The notes under the pieces are model-generated. The model saw only the letters and a program-made list of their open reading frames with translations. It did not search any database and was not told the DNA's origin. Shown in pieces: positions 11,001-56,566 of a DNA stretch of 64,000 nt. A program made the position numbers and the translations under genes. The DNA lies in the NCBI GenBank assembly GCA_950097015.1, contig CATNEN010000039.1:5890001-5954000 (forward strand), read 5' to 3'. This stretch comes from Macrostomum hystrix (taxonomy: Eukaryota > Animalia > Platyhelminthes). Within the stretch, counting starts at the first letter, position 1, and each line of letters starts with the position of its first letter.

Positions 11001-14000
11001 GACGTCTCGGTGCAAATCAACATCAAGCCAGATGCCAGTCTGCCACCCACCGTCAAGGGTCCCAGTGCACCTCCGGGAAGCGCTAGATCGCGAGCTGGAC
11101 GAGCAGGAGCAGCTAGGTATCATTCAGCCTGTCGAGGGCCTGGCACCTTGGGTCAGCCGCATCGTCGTCGTGCCGAAGGAGGACCGCAAAAGCGTTCGCA
11201 TCACCCAGGACCTGCGAGACATGAACAAGCCAGCCCTGAGAGAGCGACACCAAATCTCGACATTCGAGGAGGCAACCAGCGACATGGCGGGATCGACGAT
11301 CTTCACCAAGCTCGACATCTTCAAGGCGTTTCACCAGATCGAGATCAGAGAAGACAGCCGCAAGTACTTCGTGTTCTCGACTCCCCGAGGAATGCGGCAG
11401 CTCACACGCCTGAGCATGGGATTCGCATCGGCATCGGAGATCCTTCAGCGCGTGATGCAGACGGTGCTGGCGGGCCTAGCGGGCGTCAAATGGATCCACG
11501 ATGACATCATTATCCACAGCCAGGACCTGGAGGTTCACAGAGGGCACATCGCTGCCTTCCTGACCAGACTTCGAGACCACGGCATCACCTTGAACGCTAG
11601 CAATTGGAATCCAGCCGTCGAGCGAGAAGATCGCCGAGCTGCAGGCCTTCACGGAACATCAGTCGGTCAAGGAAGTGCGGTCTTTCCTAGGCCTGGCCAA
11701 CCACCTGGAGAAGTTCATGCCGCAGCTCGCCGACAAAGCTCACACACAAAGGCCAGGAGTTTGTCTGGGACAGCGAGCAGCAGCAGGCGTTCCAGGCCGT
11801 CAAGGACTGCATCTTGGCGAGCCGCACCCTGGCCTTCTTCGACAAGCAGATGCCGACCGAGCTCGTCGTCGATGCGTCACCCGTGGGGCTCGCCGCAATC
11901 CTGCAGCAGCGGCACTCCGGCAGGCTGGTCCGGCCAGTGGCCTTCGCGAGCCGCACCGTGAGCGATGTCGAGCGCCGCTAAAGCCAGATTGATCGTGAGG
12001 CCCTGGGCGTCAAGTTCGGCTGCCAGAAGTTCTATCTTGATGGTTGCCCGCACTTCGACATCTACACCGACCACAAGCCACTGCTCGGCATCTACAAGGC
12101 GGACTCCCGGCCGCCACCTAGGCTAGAACGCATCATGCTACAGACTCAGCATTTCTCTTTCACGCTGCCCTTCCGCAAGGGCGAGGGCAACCCAGCGGAC
12201 CCTCTGAGCCGGAACCCGCTTCCGAGCCGCGTTAGCAGCAAAGACGAGGCCGGCGACAAGAGGCTGCTCAATGCTGTGGTCGAAGCAGCCACCCCGAAGG
12301 GCCTGACGCTCGAGAGGATCCGAGAGGCCACCAAACGCTGAAGGCCGTCATCGAGGCGCTCGCAACCGGCAACTAGCAGTGCGGCACGGCGACTCCCGGG
12401 CACAGTTTCCGGTCCCTGATAGACGAGCCCAGCGTGCACGCCGGCGTGCTGCTCCGCGGCAGCAGAATCGTGATCCCCTGCGAGCTCCAGCAGCTGACCA
12501 TCGGCCTGGCGCACCAGGGACACCTCGGGCAGAAGAAGACGTGCGACCGGCTGCAGCGGAAGGTCTGGTGGCCCGGCATGGCCCAGCAGGTCGAAGCCAC
12601 CATCTCGCGCTGCCTTCCGTGCCGGGCGGCCCTGCACAACGGAGCCCACAAGCAGCCGCCTATGCAGCCGACACCGCTGCCTCAAGGGCCCTGGCAATCT
12701 CTGAGTGTCGACGTCAGCGGTCCTTTTCCATCCGGCGAGATCGTGGTGGTCCTGGTGGACTATTTCAGCCGCTACCCGGATGTCCACGTAGTGCGCGGCC
12801 TGACCAGCGCTAGCATCATCAACTGTGCCATGGCCTCGTTCGCCCGGTTCGGAGTCCCGCAGCAGCTCACCACCGACAACGCGATGTACTTCACAAGCGA
12901 GGAGTTCAAGGAATTCGTCGACGGCCTCGGCGTCAAGCATCGCAGGGTCACGCCGCTCTACCCGGCAGCGAACGGCGAGGTAGAGCGCTTCAACCGCAGT
13001 CGCGGCAAGGCCGCCAACGCTGCCACGGCCGAGGGCAAGGACTGGCGATGGGCCATCGACGAGTGGCTGCTCGGCTACCGGAACTCGGTGCACCGTGGCA
13101 CGGACCGCTCGCCCAACGACCTGATGTTCAACAGAGCCGTCGGCGATGTTCTACCCTCCGGCCCCACAAAGCAGCGTGTCAGCGCCGGGAGGCAGCTGCA
13201 GCGACACGACCAGCTCTTCAAGCAGGCGATGCGGCACGCCGCGGACAAGCGCCAGGCAGCGGTCCCGCACGGCATCAAAGTGGGCGCGCGGGTCCTGCTC
13301 AGGAACCGCGGCGAGGTCAAGCTGTGGTCACCATTTGATCCGCGCCCCTGGGTCGTCAAAGCGACGAGCGACAGCGCCCTGAGTCTCGAGCGCGATGGGG
13401 CTGTCCTGAGGGGCACGTGACCGAGGTCAAGCCGCTACGAGGAGGCACCTGGGACCTTGACGGTCCTGACGGCACCCAGACCGGCGGTGCGACGCCTGCC
13501 ACTGACAGCAGCGACAGCCCGATTGCGCTGAGGGCGCACCCAAGGCAGGCGAAGCGGCCGGTAAACTACAAGCTGTTAAGCGCTGAGCGAACTGAGTGAA
13601 CTGAAAAGGTTTCGACTAACAATTGCGTTCTTGTGACCTTTGTGTTCAGGTCATTTTTTTCTCACTTCGGGGGGGGGAGATGTAGTGGTCTGCCTCGCGC
13701 ACTCACACTGTCCGCCCACGCGCCCGTACAAATGCTATTGTGTAACGCCTCAACTGCGCTCACATTGTCGATTGACCACGCGTGCAAGATTTCATTCCTG
13801 CACACTTTTGCGTGCAGGATGTCATTCCTGCACAAGCTTTATTCGTGCGATTTATTCAAGACGTTCAGCAGTAACCCGTCAAATGCTTTTCAGAAACAGT
13901 TTATTTAAATGTTTTATAAAACCAAATTGAAAAAGAAACAAACGCCATTACAGTGTGCCCGGGCTAAGTTAAATTTTATTTTCCAGGTTTTCCCAGCATT

Positions 14001-16920: not shown

Positions 16921-18252
16921 CGCTTGATGAGGCCGCTTACCTGGCGTAAGGTTTTAGATCTTGGAATACTTGCTTGGCATTGTTATCAAATTTATTCAGG
17001 TGAAAGGTAAAAGTAATTTACAATTACTGGGATGATACTCAAAGTTTAGTCCATTAAAAACTCACCTGCTTATTTAGCAAAGGTACTAAATTTACTAAAC
17101 TAATTTCGTTCTGCGAAGTCTCAGTCAGTCCCAGATCAGTCCTCACACTAAGAGTCAACGAAAAGCTTTGCTTGGCGAGAGGTCGCATTTTGGCAGATAT
17201 TTATATCGGACAAAAAAACTGACTCTGCATGACTAAATGAATGCCCTATGTTGCTCGGATAAAGAGCTGAAATGAATAAACAAGGCGACAGGGCTGCAGC
17301 GCGTAGATAAGCGAGCCATTTTTTCTGTTTTAAAGTTTTTTTCACCGAACGACCGCGCTGAATTCTCAAGAAAATCTTTTTGCAGCAATTCAACGACGAT
17401 AAAGTAAATAGGTTGCACACAGGTGCGCAGATCGAATGGTAGAAAATGTAAATCGGTCTTAACTGTGTATTTTACTGCTAGGCAACAAAAGCTACCACAT
17501 TTCTTCGCCCTAAGTTACAGGTAACTCAGCCATACTCGTCGAACTCTGTTGCAGTAAAGGCAATCGAAGTTCTGCCTCGAGCACTGATAAGTTATTTAAT
17601 CATTGATTTAAATTTTAGGACTTTGCACAAGACGCATTGGAGTTGAATATAATTTTATGAAACTATGAGTGCAGTCTCAAGTATAATTTCAGTTTTCTGT
17701 ATCTGAGGCCGAAGTGCTCTACGGCATTTCTGAACTGCTTAACCTGACCTGTGAAGTTTGGTTGTGTCCTTTTGATGCTCAAATTTAAGAACAAGACGAT
17801 TTTTTCTGAAACAAGACTTGTTACTATCAGTAACTAGATAGTTAGAAGCTATTGTTTTCTGGCAGAAAATGTTTCTTATATTAAACAAGGTTAACGAAGC
17901 TCAGGGCTTCAATAATGATTTCATTCACGAGGTAGATTTAATTATATTTTTTATTGCACCTGAGCCTCCAAATAACACGAACCAGCTGTTCTAAAACTAG
18001 AAATTTCGTCATCAGTCTTTTATTTTAATTGTTTTTTCAGTGAGTTAGCCTTAAAAAAGGAGAACTTTTACAGACGTATGCCTGGCGAAATGCTAAAAAT
18101 AAACTTTTAAAAGCAGCATTAGAAAGCATCTATTGCGAAATAATATCGAGCCCCCCAAGTTGACCATCCACGTGGTCTGTTTCGCCTCATTACAGCGTAC
18201 ACAAATTTTATCAGGCAGCTTCTTACCGCAAGCAACTTACCGACTTCTTACC

Positions 18253-18500
18253 GACTCTGGCTACTGTCTGTGCTGTGACTCTGGCTACTGTCTGTGCTGT
18301 GACTCTGGCTACTGTCTGTGCTGTGACTCTGGCTACTGTCTGTGCTGTGACTCTGGCTACTGTCTGTGCTGTGACTCTGGCTACTGTCTGTGCTGTGACT
18401 CTGGCTACTGTCTGTGCTATGACTCTGGCTACTGTCTGTGCTATGACTCTGGCTACTGTCTGTGCTGTGACTCTGGCTACTGTCTGTGCTGTGACTCTGA
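18253..18500. repeat. 24-bp minisatellite (GACTCTGGCTACTGTCTGTGCTGT) x~10
   Basis: Directly visible. Confidence 0.95.
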
Positions 18501-19250
18501 CTCTGCTTCGTAGATCAGTAATAATGTAGGACACAAGTTCTCATGGTCTGAGCATGCTCCTTGCCTCGTCTAAATTTAGTGTGCCCTTATCTGCTCAGCT
18601 CTGGCTTGCACGCATTGCGGACTGCGCCGTTCCAAGAAAATTTCGCGATAAATCCGGAAGTTTTGCGGAGACTGCGACAGACACACACAAGTCAGGAAGG
18701 AGTTGTTGTTAACTCTAGCTTCTCAGCTCTGATTTGGAGCTGGCTGAGCTATGAAAGAGAGAAAGATTGTTGGCTGCTTGTTTCGACATCAGCAAAGTCT
18801 GACAATAAATTGACGGATGTGGGAGCGACACAAAAGGGACTTGGGTGGTGTCGGATATTGCCTGGCCTCAGAAGGGGCTGTAAGCTCAAGGCTTAGGGAT
18901 AACAGAAGGCTTGACTCCCTGAGACTGCTGGCGCGGGTCTTGTGCTTAATTCCTTGTTAATTTGCGGCACCAAAAACCGTCATACAATGGCTCAGCGGCC
19001 TAGAGCGGCTTCCGTTCTCTTTTCCTTGCCTCTCCAGTCACCCGTTTTCGGAATGGAATGGCAACTCATCCCAACCAGGCCACCGGTAATCCCCAGCTAG
19101 CTGTAAACAAGGGAAAAGAAATTGGAAAGCCGCTCGCTATAAATAGGGGCCTCCACCAGAAGCTACAGGCCTGGCAGACTCATCGCTCTTTAAAGTTAAA
19201 CTTTAGCTAGTTAACTTGAGGCTCGAAAAACGATAGGAAAAACTGGTGCC

Positions 19251-19785
19251 ATGCGCTGTCTGCAGATTCTGCTTCTGCTCTGCCTGTTGGTCTGCTGGAC
19301 TTGCAGCGGTTCTCAAGCTGGTTCTCGTGAGTACAAAGGATTCGAACCAAACTCGAATTGGATGATCATTTTATGTGCATTCTAAATTTTACAGATTCCG
19401 ATTGGGATGAGGCAGCAGAAGGGTGAGTTGTGCGTTTGGCTGTCTTATGTATCCCAATCAATTGTAACCCTGGTCTGCATGAGTAAGTTCACCGCGTGAC
19501 GTCATTAGGCAGATTATACAGTTTGGGACTGTCTCCCCTCCCGAAATATTTTCCAGCCCTGACGACGAATTCGGCCGCGATGAAGGCCGCGACTGCCGCC
19601 TGGTCTGTCATCCGCGCCATGGCTCTGGACGCAGGCACCACCCGTTGGACCTGAGCAAGCGCCCGTTTGGCGCCCTGTTCCGGCCCAAGAATCGGCCCCC
19701 GTCGCCGGAGTCGGACCGCAAGAAGCGACCATTCGGGCCGCTGTTCAGACCCATTGGGCGCAACCACAGACGACGCGATGATTGA
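19251..19785 (+). CDS. Putative neuropeptide precursor, 110 aa (exons 19251-19326, 19395-19422, 19557-19785)
   Basis: TATAAATA at ~19137, GCCATG start, signal peptide MRCLQILLLLCLLVCWTCSGSQA, two GTGAGT...CAG introns in phase, related peptides after KR and RKKR, C-terminal G-R amidation signal. Confidence 0.8.
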
Positions 19786-20131
19786 GGCTTGAGACGAGTT
19801 TGAATTAACTTCAGCAAGGCCGACTGAACTTAAAGGCGTGAAACCGCATGTTTTGGACATTTTACCTTGTACTTTAACGTACGTGACTCCAACAGAGATG
19901 CACCATCCACGCTAAATCAGAAAATGGTAGACAGATAATTAAAACGTAAATTTACAGGACACTCTCTTGACATGACATTGTGCCCTTGTCATTGCTCAAC
20001 CAGTCAAATGATTTTGCGCCTTATTTCTGATTCTGAATGAAAGTAAAGAGGCAAATAAGTTCGAAGATCTAATACTATTGGTTCAGTGATACAGATCGAG
20101 GCCTATGGTAATATTTAAATCTTTCGAGCGT

Positions 20132-22741
20132 TTAGGTATTGTGAGAGGCAGCCGATGCTTCAGCAGGAAATTTCCTGGCGTATTCAGGTGTTGTAGGAAC
20201 ATAGCCGTGTCGGATGAGGCTGTGAGCTGTGTCCGCAATGCTTTGACCCAGGTCCATCGGCTGGACACGCAGAAGTTCGCGCATCTGAAGACGAAGGCGA
20301 GTGGTTCACGTAAAGTATGCGGCACACAGCTGAACGCATGCAAAAAGCACAGGCGCACAAACCTTGGAGTTGTCGTACACGGACTCGCAGCCAAGACCGT
20401 ACAGCAGCTGCGACACATCGGACCTGAAGTAGCCGATCAGGCGGATGAGCATGTCCGGAGCGGACCTCAGCGGCACCCGGTAGCCGAGCGGGCCCAGCTG
20501 CTCATGAAGGATGACGGCAACATCGCGCAGGCCCAGAGTGCCAGTGTTGACAATCACTCTCTGACCGTCCGTGTCGGAAGTTTTCAGAGCGCTCAGGTGC
20601 GCTTTGGCAACGTCGCGCACATCGATGCAGGGCAGGCACACCTGTGGCAGCTGAGGCGCCTCGCGGTTCAGAATGAAGCGAATCAGGTTGAGCGAAGTGC
20701 TGTAACCGCTCTGGGTCAGCAGAGGCCCGATCACGATGCCTGGGTTGATGCACACCAAACCGAAGTGCGGGTCTGGCCTCAGATTGAGTCGATTGGGGTG
20801 GTTTTGCGATCACTGCGATCTCTTTTACAAGTTAATTTTGATATTTGGCACTTAAATAAACCGCCATACTTTTGATCGCCTTGTAGAGCCTCCAGGCTTC
20901 TTTCTCAGCCAGGGTTTTGCTGGTCTCGTAAGTCAGACCCAGAGGACGATTTTCAGTTTCGAACCAGACGCTCTCGTCGTAGATGCGACCTTTCACACCC
21001 ATGATGCCTGAAGGTGTTTCAGGGCAGTCAAGGGCGTGAGTGAAAGGTTAGTAGGTTTGTAGGTTAGTAGGTTTGCGCTGCTCTGTTCAGGGCTTGTCAG
21101 TGTCGACAGAATTCAAAAAGATCGCATTTAAACGTATTTGCTGTCGCTGCTACCATTTTTTTCCTGGAATGTACAGGCTTTTGGTCGCTAAGTGAAGTAC
21201 TCTTAAAATAAAAAATCTAATGATTCTCTCATTTGCTGCTGGCGCCGCTCTATTAGCAACAACTTTTACTCTAGCACACACCTAAGCTAGTGATTAAGAG
21301 TAAATTTTTATGCGTTAAAAATTGACAAATTATTTTGCTCTCAAGCAACAGCTCAGAGCTTTTGCGCTCTTGCTCGGGAGCAAATTTTACCTATGTTACC
21401 TACGAGTATTAGCTCATTTTTCTGCATGCGGCCCAAATGTTAGGATGCATGCCACATAGTACAATACGATCGCTAGGTTACTAGGAGTGCGAACCCACCC
21501 GCTATGCTGGCCACTGAGGAAGTCACGACCAGCTTCTTGACGGATTGAGTGGCGGCCACAGCCTCGATGACGGCCCTGGTACCGTCGATGGCCGTTCGCA
21601 GGGTGACGTCGGCCTCGGCCTGATTCCGCGGCACTCGCTCCGGGAAGCTGCTGGCCACATGCACCACGAACTGGCAGCCGTTCACCAGGTCGGGCCAGCG
21701 GATCGTCTTGTCCAGCAGGTCAGCTTCGACGAACTCGACTCGATCGGCCGGGTACTCGGCCAGCACGGCCTTCAGCTGACTCACCTTTGTGTTGCCAGCC
21801 GATGTTAAATTTCTGGCGGTAACGCGTAGGTTGAACCCGTCGCCTAGCAGCAGCTTGGCAACGTGGCTGCCAATGAACCCCGTAGCTCCTGTGAGCAGAA
21901 CCAGACCTGAGCAGGATGGGGTTCGCTGGCAAGTCTGTCTGTGCTCAATTCACTGCCGCAAATTAAAGTTTTAAAGGCCAATATCTTTAACGAAGAGCGG
22001 GAAACTGCATTTCTTAGAAAATGTTTAAGAGGCTGGTTTTTGCCAAAAATACACTGTGGAGATGAAAAAAATAATTTTTTTTGCAAATGGCGATCTTTTT
22101 TATGGAACCGGATCCAAGTCCGCATAACATTTTACTTCAATAAATTTTATAATACTATATTCCTGAACTGTTAGTATTCATGCTTTTTCGATTACTACAC
22201 CTATGTTAACAACATTAACAGGGTGTAAACATGCAATTCTAAGTAAGTCATAGGACTAGAGAGTAATTAATTAATTATCGTTAATTAATTAACTTGATCA
22301 CTGATCAGAGAATAAGAAAACTAAAGCTAATTCCGAGCGGTTTTTTGCTTTTTTGGGCTGAATGCAATTTTAAACACATCAAACAAAGTCACTAATTTGT
22401 TGCAGAAAGTGACAATCTTTGTTGAGTATTCTTTGGGGTAAAACTAGCCTCCTCTACATTTTCTAAGAAACGCATGCCTTGTATTGCAAAAAATCCAAAA
22501 ATTTAATTTAGTCTTGAGGCAAAAGGGGTGGCCACTTAGTCGTATTATAGTCGGTGAACCATCAATGTATCTGAATTCGAGTGTATATTTGCTGTGCGCG
22601 AGACACGGAACCGCAAAATCGTTTCTCAGCCGCATATAACAGCAGCTAGTGTGAAATGCTGCTGCCAATCAATGCTAAAGTTTGTCTACAAAAACACTAA
22701 TATGTGTGTCGTATGTAAAGCTCACCTTGACTGGATGGCAT
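20132..22741 (-). CDS. Extended-SDR NADPH-dependent reductase (dihydroflavonol reductase/aldehyde reductase-like), ~374 aa; exons 22741-22726, 21906-21499, 21007-20870, 20772-20363, 20284-20132
   Basis: LLTGATGFIGSHV, VVHVAS, VVTSSVASI, catalytic YETSK, INPGIVIGP, IDVRDVAKAH; 1125 nt in frame. Confidence 0.88.
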
Positions 22742-44368: not shown

Positions 44369-46314
44369 ATGGCTTCCAGCGAGCCAGAGAGGGGCTACAG
44401 GGTGGGCAACCTGGCCAAGCTCGAGTCCAGGTTCAAATGTGCCTACTGCCACCTGCTGCTGAGAGACCCAATGCAGGGTGACTGCGGTCACAGGTACTGC
44501 AGGAACTGTGTACAGCTGATGCACTCGGAGGCCCGTGAGCTCAGGCAGCCGTCTCTTTGCCGCGAATGCGACCCAAGCGACTCCGAGCGGGCTGAGATCT
44601 CTACAGACCGAACTTACCCGGACCTGGCCATGAAGCGAGAGATCAACAAGTCGCTGCAGGTGAACTGCCCGAACTCTCCGTGTGACAGCAGCATGCAGGT
44701 GATTCAGCTCGATGAGCACCTGAAGGTGTGCGACTTCAGGCCAGAGCCGTGCAGCCAGTGCGGAGACGAGGTGCCGTTGAGCAGCATGGATGAGCACAAG
44801 TTAAAAAAGTGTCGCAGAAGACTTGTAGACTGCGGTGTCTGCCATGAACCTGTACCTTATGAGCTGCTGGATGAGCACAAGAGCTCAACATGCAAGGGTA
44901 GCACAGTGCAGTGCGAGTACTGCCAATCCCGCATCAGGGACACTGATGAGGCAAAACAGACTCATTGGCTGAAGGAGTGTCCGGTGGGCTGGCACAGCGG
45001 CAACTGTCCGTACGGTTGCCAGGACGTTGGCAAGGACTTTGAGAAGCACCGAGCGGAGCACTTGGCTACACACCTTGACAGACTGTTGGCAATGTCCAAG
45101 CAGCCCAACAGCTCCCAGCAACAGCAACAGCAGCAGCAGCAGCCAGCTGAGGCATCCAGGGGGGCTGCCCTCATGCCAGCCTCTGAGCTCACCGGAGCAG
45201 ACTTTGATGAGCTGAGCAAACTAAAAGAGAAAGCGGCTTCTCTGGAGTCCAGGATAAAGTCCCTTGCCTTGCCAGGCGACCTGCATCAGCTGCTGCGAGA
45301 TCTTCAGGGCAGCATCGCTCAGGGAGACAAGGTGGCGGAGCTGCTCAACGTTATCAAGGAGCAGTTTGAGAAGTGCTACGACAAGATCCGGCAGTATGAG
45401 CTGAAGATGCAGAAGGACCTGGAGAAGAAGCTGGACATTGAGCGCAAGCACCAGGAGCTGGTGAAGCTGCTGGCCTACAAGGAGATGAAGATCCTGGACC
45501 TGGAGCGGCGGGTTGAAGTGCTGGAGCACGCCGGCTACGACGGAGTCCTCGTGTGGAAGATCACGGATGTGCGGCGACGCAAGGAGGAGGCCAGGGAGGG
45601 CAAGGTGTGCTCAATCTACTCGCCACCGTTCTACACGGGCAAGGCTGGGTGAGTGAGGACCTCGATCCCGAATCTCTCAATCCGCTCCCGAATCCCCCAA
45701 TCCGCTCCCAAATCCCCCAATCCGTGCCCAAATCCCCCAATCCGTGCCCAAATCCCCCCAATCCACTCCTAAATCCTCCAATACACTCCCAAATCCCCCA
45801 ATCCGCTCCCAAATCCCCAATCCGCTCCAAAATCCCCCAATCCGCTCCGAAATCCTCCAATTCACCCAAACCCCCAAATCCGCTCCCAAATCCTCCAATT
45901 CACCCAAACCCTCAAATCCACTCCCAAATCCTCTAATTAGCTTCTCCGCCGCCCCTCAGGTACAAAATGTGCGGCCGGCTTTACCTGAACGGTGACGGCG
46001 CGGGCAAGAACTCGCACATCAGCCTGTTCTTCGTGATCATGCGAGGCGCCTTCGACGCTCTCCTGCCGTGGCCCTTCGCCAAGAAGGTCTCCATGATGCT
46101 GCTGGACCAGAACTTCGAGGAGCACGTGATCGACGCCTTCAAGCCGGACACTTCGTCGTCTTCCTTCAAGCGGCCCACCACCGACATGAACATCGCCTCC
46201 GGCTGCCCGCTGTTCATGCCGCTGCTGGAATTCGAGAGCAGCTCCCGCGGCTACGTGAAGGACGACACAATGTTCATCAAGTTCATTGTGGACAAGAGCG
46301 ACCTGCCCACCTGA
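44369..46314 (+). CDS. TRAF2: TNF receptor-associated factor (TRAF2/3-like), copy 1, 544 aa; exons 44369-45648, 45960-46314
   Basis: RING (CAYC..CGHRYCRNC..CREC), TRAF zinc fingers, coiled coil, MATH domain (GYKMCGRLYLNGDG..WPF..DMNIASGCPLF). Confidence 0.93.
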
Positions 46315-48047: not shown

Positions 48048-53513
<5,466 letters not shown>

Positions 53514-54344: not shown

Positions 54345-54451
54345 GTGCTTTTTTCATATAGCCGCCTACAATGCCAACAACAGCTGCCCCGTCTCGAAGC
54401 AATTTGCTCCCTGAAGCTAAAGTAAATCAGTGTAATAGACGACACTATCAA

Positions 54452-56566
54452 ATGGCTTCCAGCGAGCCAGAGAGGGGCTACAGGGTGGGCAACCTGGCCA
54501 AGCTCGAGTCCAGGTTCAAATGTGCCTACTGCCACCTGCTGCTGAGAGACCCAATGCAGGGTGACTGCGGTCACAGGTACTGCAGGAACTGTGTACAGCT
54601 GATGCACTCGGAGGCCCGTGAGCTCAGGCAGCCGTCTCTTTGCCGCGAATGCGACCCAAGCGACTCCGAGCGGGCTGAGATCTCTACAGACCGAACTTAC
54701 CCGGACCTGGCCATGAAGCGAGAGATCAACAAGTCGCTGCAGGTGAACTGCCCGAACTCTCCGTGTGACAGCAGCATGCAGGTGATTCAGCTCGATGAGC
54801 ACCTGAAGGTGTGCGACTTCAGGCCAGAGCCGTGCAGCCAGTGCGGAGACGAGGTGCCGTTGAGCAGCATGGATGAGCACAAGTTAAAAAAGTGTCGCAG
54901 AAGACTTGTAGACTGCGGTGTCTGTCATGAACCTGTACCTTATGAGCTGCTGGATGAGCACAAGAGCTCAACATGCAAGGGTAGCACAGTGCAGTGCGAG
55001 TACTGCCAATCCCGCATCAGGGACACTGATGAGGCAAAACAGACTCATTGGCTGAAGGAGTGTCCGGTGGGCTGGCACAGCGGCAACTGTCCGTACGGTT
55101 GCCAGGACGTTGGCAAGGACTTTGAGAAGCACCGAGCGGAGCACTTGGCTACACACCTTGATAGACTGTTGGCAATGTCCAAGCAGCCCAACAGCTCCCA
55201 GCAACAGCAACAGCAGCAGCAGCAGCCAGCTGAGGCATCCAGGGGGGCTGCCCTCATGCCAGCCTCTGAGCTCACCGGAGCAGACTTTGATGAGCTGAGC
55301 AAACTAAAAGAGAAAGCGGCTTCTCTGGAGTCCAGGATAAAGTCCCTTGCCTTGCCAGGCGACCTGCATCAGCTGCTGCGAGATCTTCAGGGCAGCATCG
55401 CTCAGGGAGACAAGGTGGCGGAGCTGCTCAACGTTATCAAGGAGCAGTTTGAGAAGTGCTACGACAAGATCCGGCAGTATGAGCTGAAGATGCAGAAGGA
55501 CCTGGAGAAGAAGCTGGACATTGAGCGCAAGCACCAAGAGCTGGTGAAGCTGCTGGCCTACAAGGAGATGAAGATCCTGGACCTGGAGCGGCGGGTTGAA
55601 GTGCTGGAGCACGCCGGCTACGACGGAGTCCTCGTGTGGAAGATCACGGATGTGCGGCGACGCAAGGAGGAGGCCAGGGAGGGCAAGGTGTGCTCAATCT
55701 ACTCGCCACCGTTCTACACGGGCAAGGCTGGGTGAGTGAGGACCTCGATCCCGAATCTCTCAATCCGCTCCCGAATCCCCCAATCCGCTCCTAAATCCCT
55801 CAAATCCGCTCCCAAATCCCCCAATCCGTGCCCAAATCCCCCCAATCCACTCCTAAATCCTCCAATACATTCCCAAATCCCCCAATCCGCTCCAAAATCC
55901 CCCAATCCGCTTCGAAATCCTCCAATTCACCCAAACCCTCAAATCCGCTCCGAAATCCTCCAATTCACCCAAACCCTCAAATCCGCTCCGAAATCCTCAA
56001 ATTCACCCAAACCCTCAAATCCGCTCCCAAATCCTCCAATTCACCCAAACCCTCAAATCCACTCCCAAATCCTCCAATTCACCCAAACCCTCAAATCCGC
56101 TCCGAAATCCTTCAATTCACCCAAACCCTCAAATCCGCTCCGAAATCCTTCAATTCACCCAAACCCTCAAATCCACTCCCAAATCCTCTAATTAGCTTCT
56201 CCGCCGCCCCTCAGGTACAAAATGTGCGGCCGGCTTTACCTGAACGGTGACGGCGCGGGCAAGAACTCGCACATCAGCCTGTTCTTCGTGATCATGCGAG
56301 GGGCCTTCGACGCTCTCCTGCCGTGGCCCTTCGCCAAGAAGGTCTCCATGATGCTGCTGGACCAGAACTTCGAGGAGCACGTGATCGACGCCTTCAAGCC
56401 GGACACTTCGTCGTCTTCCTTCAAGCGGCCCACCACCGACATGAACATCGCCTCCGGCTGCCCGCTGTTCATGCCGCTGCTGGACTTCGAGAGCAGCTCC
56501 CGCGGCTACGTGAAGGATGACACAATGTTCATCAAGTTCATTGTGGACAAGAGCGACCTGCCCTGA
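54452..56566 (+). CDS. TRAF2: TRAF2/3-like, copy 2, 543 aa; exons 54452-55731, 56215-56566 (an in-frame upstream ATG at 54371 is possible)
   Basis: Nearly identical to copy 1 over the CDS. Confidence 0.93.

Follow-up and report, generated by a model that had tools for sequence, protein, structure and literature searches.

The window analysed here is a stretch of 64,000 nucleotides (nt) from the flatworm Macrostomum hystrix (assembly GCA_950097015.1, contig CATNEN010000039.1, positions 5,890,001 to 5,954,000 of the forward strand), and all coordinates below are those of the window unless stated otherwise. On its plus strand lies a three-exon gene for a predicted secretory precursor with two copies of the motif PFGxLFRP, which had been proposed in a preliminary description made from the sequence letters. 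We found this hidden gene to be genuine, expressed and single-copy in a Macrostomum flatworm. The three-exon model proved exact at every boundary: the exons 19251-19326, 19395-19422 and 19557-19785 (plus strand) join into a coding sequence of 333 nt for 110 residues, and the intron phases, 1 and 2, fit. The TATA box, the GCCATG start, the two in-phase introns and the 28-nt micro-exon named beforehand are all present in the sequence, and every coordinate held apart from the start of the TATA box, which is 19138 and so one base off the 19137 given earlier.

Splicing was read from public sequencing runs. Eight runs from two studies contained 25-57% of the sampled words of 19150-19950, a share as expected for a spliced transcript, and four of the eight (X1, X4, X5 and X6, again from two studies) were aligned to 18000-21500. 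The runs were used as assembled contigs, from which neither the level and site of expression nor the precise ends of the transcript can be read. Those of X1, X5 and X6 contain the joints 19326/19395 and 19422/19557, and both skipped parts run from GT to AG. The same two joints occur in run X4, which carries another organism label, is at least 99% alike and represents a near-identical strain or a relative. Its coding sequence departs from this gene in two places only: the final Ser codon of exon 1 is changed synonymously in the last two letters of the exon, and three nucleotides are deleted in frame at 19574, within the acidic spacer. Both junctions that the preliminary description had put forward for checking are thus seen in contigs of four runs and two studies.

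That the runs are RNA was at first an automatic guess, and it is the introns that establish it. The X1 contig ends at 19880, and the X5 and X6 contigs continue into a convergent neighbour on the minus strand, whose introns (20285-20362 and 20773-20869, reading CT..AC) are skipped in these contigs as well. Contigs without the introns of two genes on opposite strands indicate transcripts and not genomic DNA, and since exon 3 is single-copy in the genome, a processed retrocopy is excluded as the contig source. The 3′ untranslated region (UTR) of the neighbour adjoins or overlaps the one of the peptide gene, which leads assemblers to fuse both transcripts into one contig. The elements of the transcribed unit, in order along the window, are as follows.

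19138-19145, plus strand: TATA box TATAAATA, read from the sequence
19179-19250, plus strand: 5′ UTR, minimum extent (contigs start at 19179 in X5, 19195 in X6 and 19210 in X1)
19251-19326, plus strand: coding part of exon 1 with the start codon and the predicted signal peptide, 25 codons and one base, MRCLQILLLLCLLVCWTCSGSQAGS
19327-19394, plus strand: intron 1, 68 nt, GT..AG, phase 1, GTGAGT...TTTTACAG
19395-19422, plus strand: exon 2, the 28-nt micro-exon, (H)SDWDEAAE(G), found between both joints in all four runs
19423-19556, plus strand: intron 2, 134 nt, GT..AG, phase 2, GTGAGT...TTTTCCAG
19557-19785, plus strand: coding part of exon 3 to the TGA stop (19783-19785), with the translation given in the preliminary description
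19786-19880, plus strand: 3′ UTR, minimum extent set by the end of the X1 contig at 19880, the true 3′ end not being fixed

The 5′ UTR is free of any ATG, and an in-frame TAA (19212-19214) lies upstream of the start codon, which stands in the context GCC ATG (19248-19253, with the ATG at 19251). The first contig start, 19179, is located 41 nt past the first T of the TATA box and 34 nt past its last base, which fits a TATA-directed start, with the caveat that assembled contigs usually fall short of the true 5′ end. On the 3′ side AATAAA is absent before 19880, and an ATTAAA was read at 19938.

Relatives were sought in protein databases with exon 3, exon 1 or the M. lignano protein as queries. 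The only ones among about 15 billion proteins were three hypothetical proteins of 94 amino acids (aa) from Macrostomum lignano, Mlig024080 g1-g3, which the alignment identifies as orthologues. A search of 5.8 billion clusters with exon 3 returned one protein, BOX15_Mlig024080g1 (94 aa, P0001 below), which shares 66% identity with exon 3 in BLASTP (E 8e-20) and whose cluster is made up of the M. lignano homeologs g1, g2 and g3 (PAA61818.1, PAA53004.1 and PAA92260.1; mutually 97-99% identical). The exon 3 product reads PDDEFGRDEGRDCRLVCHPRHGSGRRHHPLDLS-KR-PFGALFRPKNRPPSPESD-RKKR-PFGPLFRPI-GR-NHRRRDD-stop, and P0001 reads MRFAWTLLLLGLLACWANCGSVEAGS-HPDWDEMAEG-PEDEPDDAGCHWVCRPRHLS-KR-PFGALFRPRHPPHPDSD-RKKR-PFGPLFRPH-GRR-PRD. 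The M. lignano protein is therefore co-linear through all three exons, micro-exon included, which provides independent support for the splice model. Together with the spliced contigs, this agreement goes well beyond what chance could produce.

Comparing the two species revealed the same order of parts in both: a predicted signal peptide, HxDWDExAEG, an acidic spacer, CxxVCxPRH, LSKR-PFGALFRP and SDRKKR-PFGPLFRP-X-GR. The first M. lignano peptide, PFGALFRPRHPPHPDSD, has the same core PFGALFRP as the one here. Unlike the gene of M. hystrix, Mlig024080 encodes 94 instead of 110 aa and is without the 10-residue insertion GSGRRHHPLD; its would-be amidated residue is His and not Ile, followed by GRR and not GR, and it is present as three homeologous copies instead of one. 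Invariant in all four sequences are C..VC.PRH, LSKRPFGALFRP, PP.P.SDRKKRPFGPLFRP and.GR. Between LSKR and GR, identity extends to 31 of 37 positions, among them the whole of both 8-residue cores and all basic sites, as against about one third in the spacer (hand count on the alignment).

The 110-residue product begins with an n-region containing Arg2 and a 13-residue hydrophobic core (LQILLLLCLLVCW), and its Kyte-Doolittle 9-residue means are 2.9-3.8 over residues 4-8 and lie below zero after residue 15. Judged by hydropathy and the -3/-1 rule only, this part is probably a signal peptide, MRCLQILLLLCLLVCWTCSGSQA/GS, cleaved at the slash after Ala23 (SQA/GS fits the -3/-1 rule). The matching N-terminus in M. 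lignano is MRFAWTLLLLGLLACWANCGSVEA/GS, with the small residues VEA at the cleavage point. Downstream, the following parts of the precursor were recognized.

19594-19620, plus strand: Cys pair CRLVCHPRH, with which the acidic pro-region ends; consensus CxxVCxPRH, its six named residues invariant in four sequences
19657-19662, plus strand: predicted Lys-Arg convertase site before peptide 1; LSKR invariant in four sequences
19663-19716, plus strand: predicted peptide 1, PFGALFRPKNRPPSPESD, 18 aa, no amidation signal, predicted [M+H]+ 2012.035
19717-19728, plus strand: predicted Arg-Lys-Lys-Arg convertase (furin-type) site; SDRKKR invariant in four sequences
19729-19761, plus strand: peptide 2, PFGPLFRPI and then Gly-Arg; predicted PFGPLFRPI-NH2, [M+H]+ 1042.620
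19762-19782, plus strand: basic/acidic C-terminal tail NHRRRDD, poorly conserved ((R)PRD in M. lignano)

The signal peptide, acidic spacer, repeats behind dibasic sites and Gly-basic signal listed in the preliminary description are thus all present, and KR, RKKR, both cores and the Gly-Arg are kept in M. lignano. Likewise, the possible extra peptide with a CxxxC motif gained weight from the conservation of its Cys pair as CxxVCxPRH, which may form a disulphide loop. The conserved Cys pair would also suit a small secreted protein that is never cut and acts intact, at about 87 residues with one disulphide, cleavage here being predicted only. We regard such a protein as very improbable, because conservation sits in two short repeats flanked by invariant basic sites, the rest being poorly conserved and tolerating a 10-residue indel, and because neither Pfam nor PDB profile searches detected a fold or domain.

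The two internal cores match at seven of eight residues, and four of the seven common residues use different codons (CCG/CCA, TTT/TTC, GGC/GGG and CGG/AGA), so that the repeat is old, is kept at the protein level and does not stem from a recent DNA duplication. A Gly-basic amidation signal follows copy 2 only, as RPI-G-R here and as RPH-G-RR in M. lignano. The proposed PFGPLFRPI-amide was accordingly borne out in its PFGxLFRP core and Gly-Arg, both conserved, and was over-specific in its ending '...RPI-amide', as the Ile is His in M. lignano.

A signal peptide of this kind would send the protein into the secretory pathway and would probably be removed after Ala23. Prohormone convertases would then cut after KR, after RKKR and after the Arg that follows Gly; a carboxypeptidase would trim the basic residues, and peptidylglycine alpha-amidating monooxygenase would turn the exposed Gly into a C-terminal amide. 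The products would be PFGPLFRPI-NH2 (PFGPLFRPH-NH2 in M. lignano), the free-acid 18-mer PFGALFRPKNRPPSPESD and an acidic pro-region peptide with a small CxxVC loop, and the peptides would act as neuropeptides or hormones on a receptor. With regard to enzymes of this kind, the genome has eight exon-level matches to the PHM/DBH-type Cu2_monooxygen domain (PF01082, a model that cannot separate PHM from dopamine beta-hydroxylase-type enzymes) and one gene for 7B2. The latter protein is the chaperone of the convertase PC2. The nervous system of M. lignano expresses a PC2 homologue, whose knock-down kills hatchlings (PMC4490696).

Directly established are the gene structure, its splicing and transcription, the orthology with M. 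lignano and the conserved cores and cleavage sites; the signal cleavage site, processing, amidation, neuronal origin and action on a receptor are what we infer from them. We consider it fairly probable that the gene encodes a 110-residue secretory prepropeptide, whose peptides are most likely neuropeptides or hormones of an orphan family. Several observations weigh against this. The would-be amidated residue is Ile here and His in M. lignano, a kind of difference uncommon among amidated neuropeptides; amidation in M. hystrix requires a cut at one single Arg (GR-N), where M. lignano has GRR; and peptide 1 lacks an amidation signal. Moreover, neuronal origin and the mature peptides are deduced from sequence, the signal cleavage from the two means named above only, and conservation is documented in two species of one genus only, which leaves room for a fast-evolving secreted peptide of non-neural origin.

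Such a peptide, processed by convertases as well, might be a prostate or seminal-fluid, adhesive, pharyngeal or epidermal gland product, or an antimicrobial or defensive peptide. The reproductive glands of Macrostomum express numerous small secreted proteins that evolve fast and are restricted to the lineage (PMC5977470, PMC10468722), and the confinement of the family to this genus in our searches and the quick evolution of the terminal residue and spacers would agree with an origin there. On the other hand, short cores placed directly behind KR and RKKR, together with a conserved Gly-basic pair, are the signature of neuroendocrine precursors, and the cores are fully identical between M. hystrix and M. 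lignano, unlike those of typical rapidly evolving seminal-fluid proteins. Mlig024080 is also absent from the supplementary text of a neoblast/germline re-analysis, a weak point as the files may be incomplete. As for an antimicrobial role, the peptides are short and Pro-rich and appear insufficiently amphipathic or cationic. Taken together, we judge a non-neural origin to be rather unlikely, though it deserves to be kept in mind, and the neuropeptide or hormone reading is preferred.

The C-terminus is the most constrained part of most amidated neuropeptides. Here the change of the amidated residue from Ile to His between species suggests that the constraint lies on the Pro-capped N-terminal core, PFG(A/P)LFRP, and not on the C-terminus. 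It is conceivable, and we put it forward tentatively, that the peptides are ligands of a signalling system restricted to macrostomids or to flatworms at large, in which recognition would go through the Pro-capped N-terminal core and not the amidated C-terminus; in a bolder version they would be the relic of an ancestral NMU-like LFRPRN peptide, whose vertebrate-type core was kept in a spiralian while its amidated end was remodelled.

The search for relatives beyond M. lignano yielded little. A profile hidden Markov model of the alignment, run against 1.84 billion representatives, retrieved only P0002 and P0003 beyond P0001. These two, one from an ENA contig and one from a JGI metagenome contig, are tandem repeats in translation that lack a signal peptide, and they were judged unrelated. 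P0003, of 294 aa, contains a tandem repeat of about 70 residues with (K/T)KVRPF(G/A)PYFRPRTP four times, and no other sequence from outside Macrostomum in the profile search has a PFGxxFRP-like unit. Exon 3 and P0001 as queries of word-indexed searches gave nothing beyond M. lignano, and a metagenome scan with the alignment produced 311 pattern matches, none of which was confirmed. The PFGxLFRP precursor family has thus been seen so far only in Macrostomum, as far as sequence databases reach; as flatworms are sparsely covered in the protein libraries, the lack of matches outside the genus is weak evidence that relatives are truly missing there. Within the genome, a paralogue search with exon 3 recovered the locus itself and three weak matches. 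The best of the three (L002, G000:C1:21395227-21398418) was rejected: it is an off-frame DCRIVCYRMH inside a mariner/Tc1-like transposase remnant and mimics CRLVCHPRH by chance.

A degenerate DNA pattern for PFGxLFRP hit nine sites in the genome versus two for a control, namely the two of this gene, five in beta-tubulin genes or fragments (PFGQLFRP) and two in short open frames (18 and 8 codons). Beta-tubulin, a cytoplasmic protein without kinship to the precursor, shares the octamer PFGxLFRP in its conserved segment GPFGQLFRPDNFVFGQ by coincidence, which indicates that eight matching residues prove little. The beta-tubulin loci with PFGQLFRP number at least five, L005-L008 and L013; L005 looks truncated or degenerate and runs into a DRPLK(N/D)RGE(S/T) repeat.

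With respect to named families, Pfam gave no match at E up to 10 for exon 3 or P0001. The PDB profile search returned only pre-pro-osteocalcin (E 0.05), over the signal peptide, pro-region and RxRR site; kinship was rejected, the likeness being that of secretory precursors in general. The preliminary description had named no bilaterian family for the motif, and indeed none matched in Pfam, PDB or profile searches. It had, however, overlooked that copy 1, LFRP[K/R][N/H], comes near the FRPRN of neuromedin U, a family in which membership fails too, as set out below.

NmU-8 is YFLFRPRN and a cockroach pyrokinin is LVPFRPRL (PMC1397894), both of which bear a striking local likeness to ALFRPKN of copy 1 and its M. 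lignano counterpart ALFRPRH. In particular, F-R-P-[K/R]-[N/H] matches four of the last five residues of NmU (FRPRN), and a Leu precedes it as in FLFRPRN. Read together with Antho-RPamide-4, GP(Hyp)SLFRP-amide (PMC7523074), and with kisspeptin 2 as the first neighbour in the ESM Atlas, these likenesses would speak for a strongly diverged member of the neuromedin U/pyrokinin (PRX-amide) family, of the kisspeptins or of the cnidarian RP-amides. We find such membership improbable. The NMU-like string of copy 1 is internal in both species and is followed by R/P-P, not by Gly, so that it is neither C-terminal nor amidated; and PRX-amides end P-R-X-NH2, whereas the amidated copy here would end R-P-X-NH2, with the order of Arg and Pro reversed and an ending that is not R-P-NH2 either. 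The lack of any Pfam match and the occurrence of the PFGxLFRP octamer in beta-tubulin also count against it. Moreover, across the genome the Pfam NMU model PF02070 yielded four weak hits, none of them at this locus. The two best of these hits were inspected and are chance QFLFR-type strings.

Likewise, the likeness to the cnidarian RP-amide LPPGPLPRP-amide, noted in the preliminary description, breaks down at the defining feature. The RP-amide family is defined by a C-terminal Arg-Pro-NH2 and is known only from Hexacorallia (PMC7523074), and in neither copy of either Macrostomum species does Gly follow Arg-Pro directly. The closest cnidarian peptide is not LPPGPLPRP-NH2 but Antho-RPamide-4, GP(Hyp)SLFRP-NH2 (PMC7523074). 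Antho-RPamides and the peptides here are both short and Pro-rich, with (S/P)LFRP or PLPRP and a Pro-type cap at the N-terminus; the former, however, end in Arg-Pro-NH2, whereas the precursor here has RP-I-G-R and RP-K-N and that of M. lignano RP-H-G-RR and RP-R-H. No precursor similarity was detected between the Antho-RPamides and the PFGxLFRP gene.

Two further families were rejected on their termini. Kisspeptins have the C-terminus F-G-L-R-F/Y-NH2, and the predicted peptides end RPI-NH2 or RPH-NH2, with no Pfam match to this family. The FVRI-amides of spiralians and flatworms (npp-1 type) end (F/Y)-V-R-I-NH2, and the endings here, F-R-P-I-NH2 in M. hystrix and F-R-P-H-NH2 in M. lignano, have an intervening Pro and an Ile that is not conserved. 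The neighbours of the M. lignano protein in the ESM Atlas are all small neuropeptide precursors (kisspeptin 2, DH31, tachykinin, NPFF, PDH, orexin, CCK and QRFP), with scores of 0.87-0.88 that stay under the lead threshold of 0.9 and amount to a lead at most, not to evidence; kisspeptin 2 ranks first with a score of 0.88 and 143 shared features, which is the only link to the kisspeptins.

Closer in kind are the npp and spp precursors of planarians, which are also small secreted precursors with a few or several short peptides between basic sites, many of them without relatives outside flatworms, and whose processing depends on PC2 (PMC2953531). The main text of Collins et al. 2010 contains no planarian peptide with LFRP, PFGP or PFGA (PMC2953531). 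Lineage-restricted prohormones are common in flatworms, so no new kind of biology is opened by the PFGxLFRP gene: it adds a further candidate neuropeptide restricted to its lineage and is not a system of a new kind.

The preliminary description had also suggested that the peptides might belong to an undescribed signalling system. As a sequence the gene was not entirely new, since the orthologues are already in GenBank/UniProt as hypothetical proteins; on the literature side, no paper that mentions Mlig024080 was found. This gene id occurs in no paper's main text, nor in the supplementary text examined for Macrostomum papers, the files of which may be incomplete. The peptide strings appear in none of the papers searched, except for 'LFRPamide' in the cnidarian RP-amide paper; the catalogues of McVeigh 2009 and Koziol 2016 lay outside this comparison, and a prior description there is possible. 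Mlig024080 merits annotation in M. lignano. Catalogues of flatworm neuropeptides are drawn mostly from planarians and parasites, and Macrostomum is an early-branching model capable of transgenesis, in which each verified precursor is a testable ligand for deorphanising G-protein-coupled receptors, for RNA interference or for reporter work. An invariant N-terminal core with a variable amidated residue poses a concrete question on peptide recognition, and, as this gene shows, micro-exon genes with a coding length of some 330 bases can be found from the raw sequence.

Next to the peptide gene, the convergent neighbour on the minus strand occupies 19881-21008 and beyond, with exons that end at 20284 and span 20363-20772 and 20870-21008. 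YETSK occurs in its product, which resembles an extended short-chain dehydrogenase/epimerase, although Pfam gave no match for the two exon pieces of it that were tested.

Elsewhere in the window, a remnant of a Ty3/gypsy-type retroelement lies at 11032-13420 (plus strand), where an open reading frame (ORF) with RVT_1 (E 2e-19) is followed by an integrase ORF (Integrase_H2C2, rve); the region is GC-rich, at 0.61 over 12001-14000. Between 24001 and 34000 there is a strong GC skew with a change of sign (+0.34 at 24-26 kb, -0.39 at 30-32 kb), and the long ORFs there match only low-complexity repeat models (GLTT, OEP); the region probably consists of minisatellite or repeat arrays. Finally, two intronless ORFs on the plus strand, at 44369-45652 and 54371-55735, have near-identical TRAF-type matches (TRAF3_RING, zf-TRAF), and an ankyrin-repeat ORF (48965-50251) is located between them.

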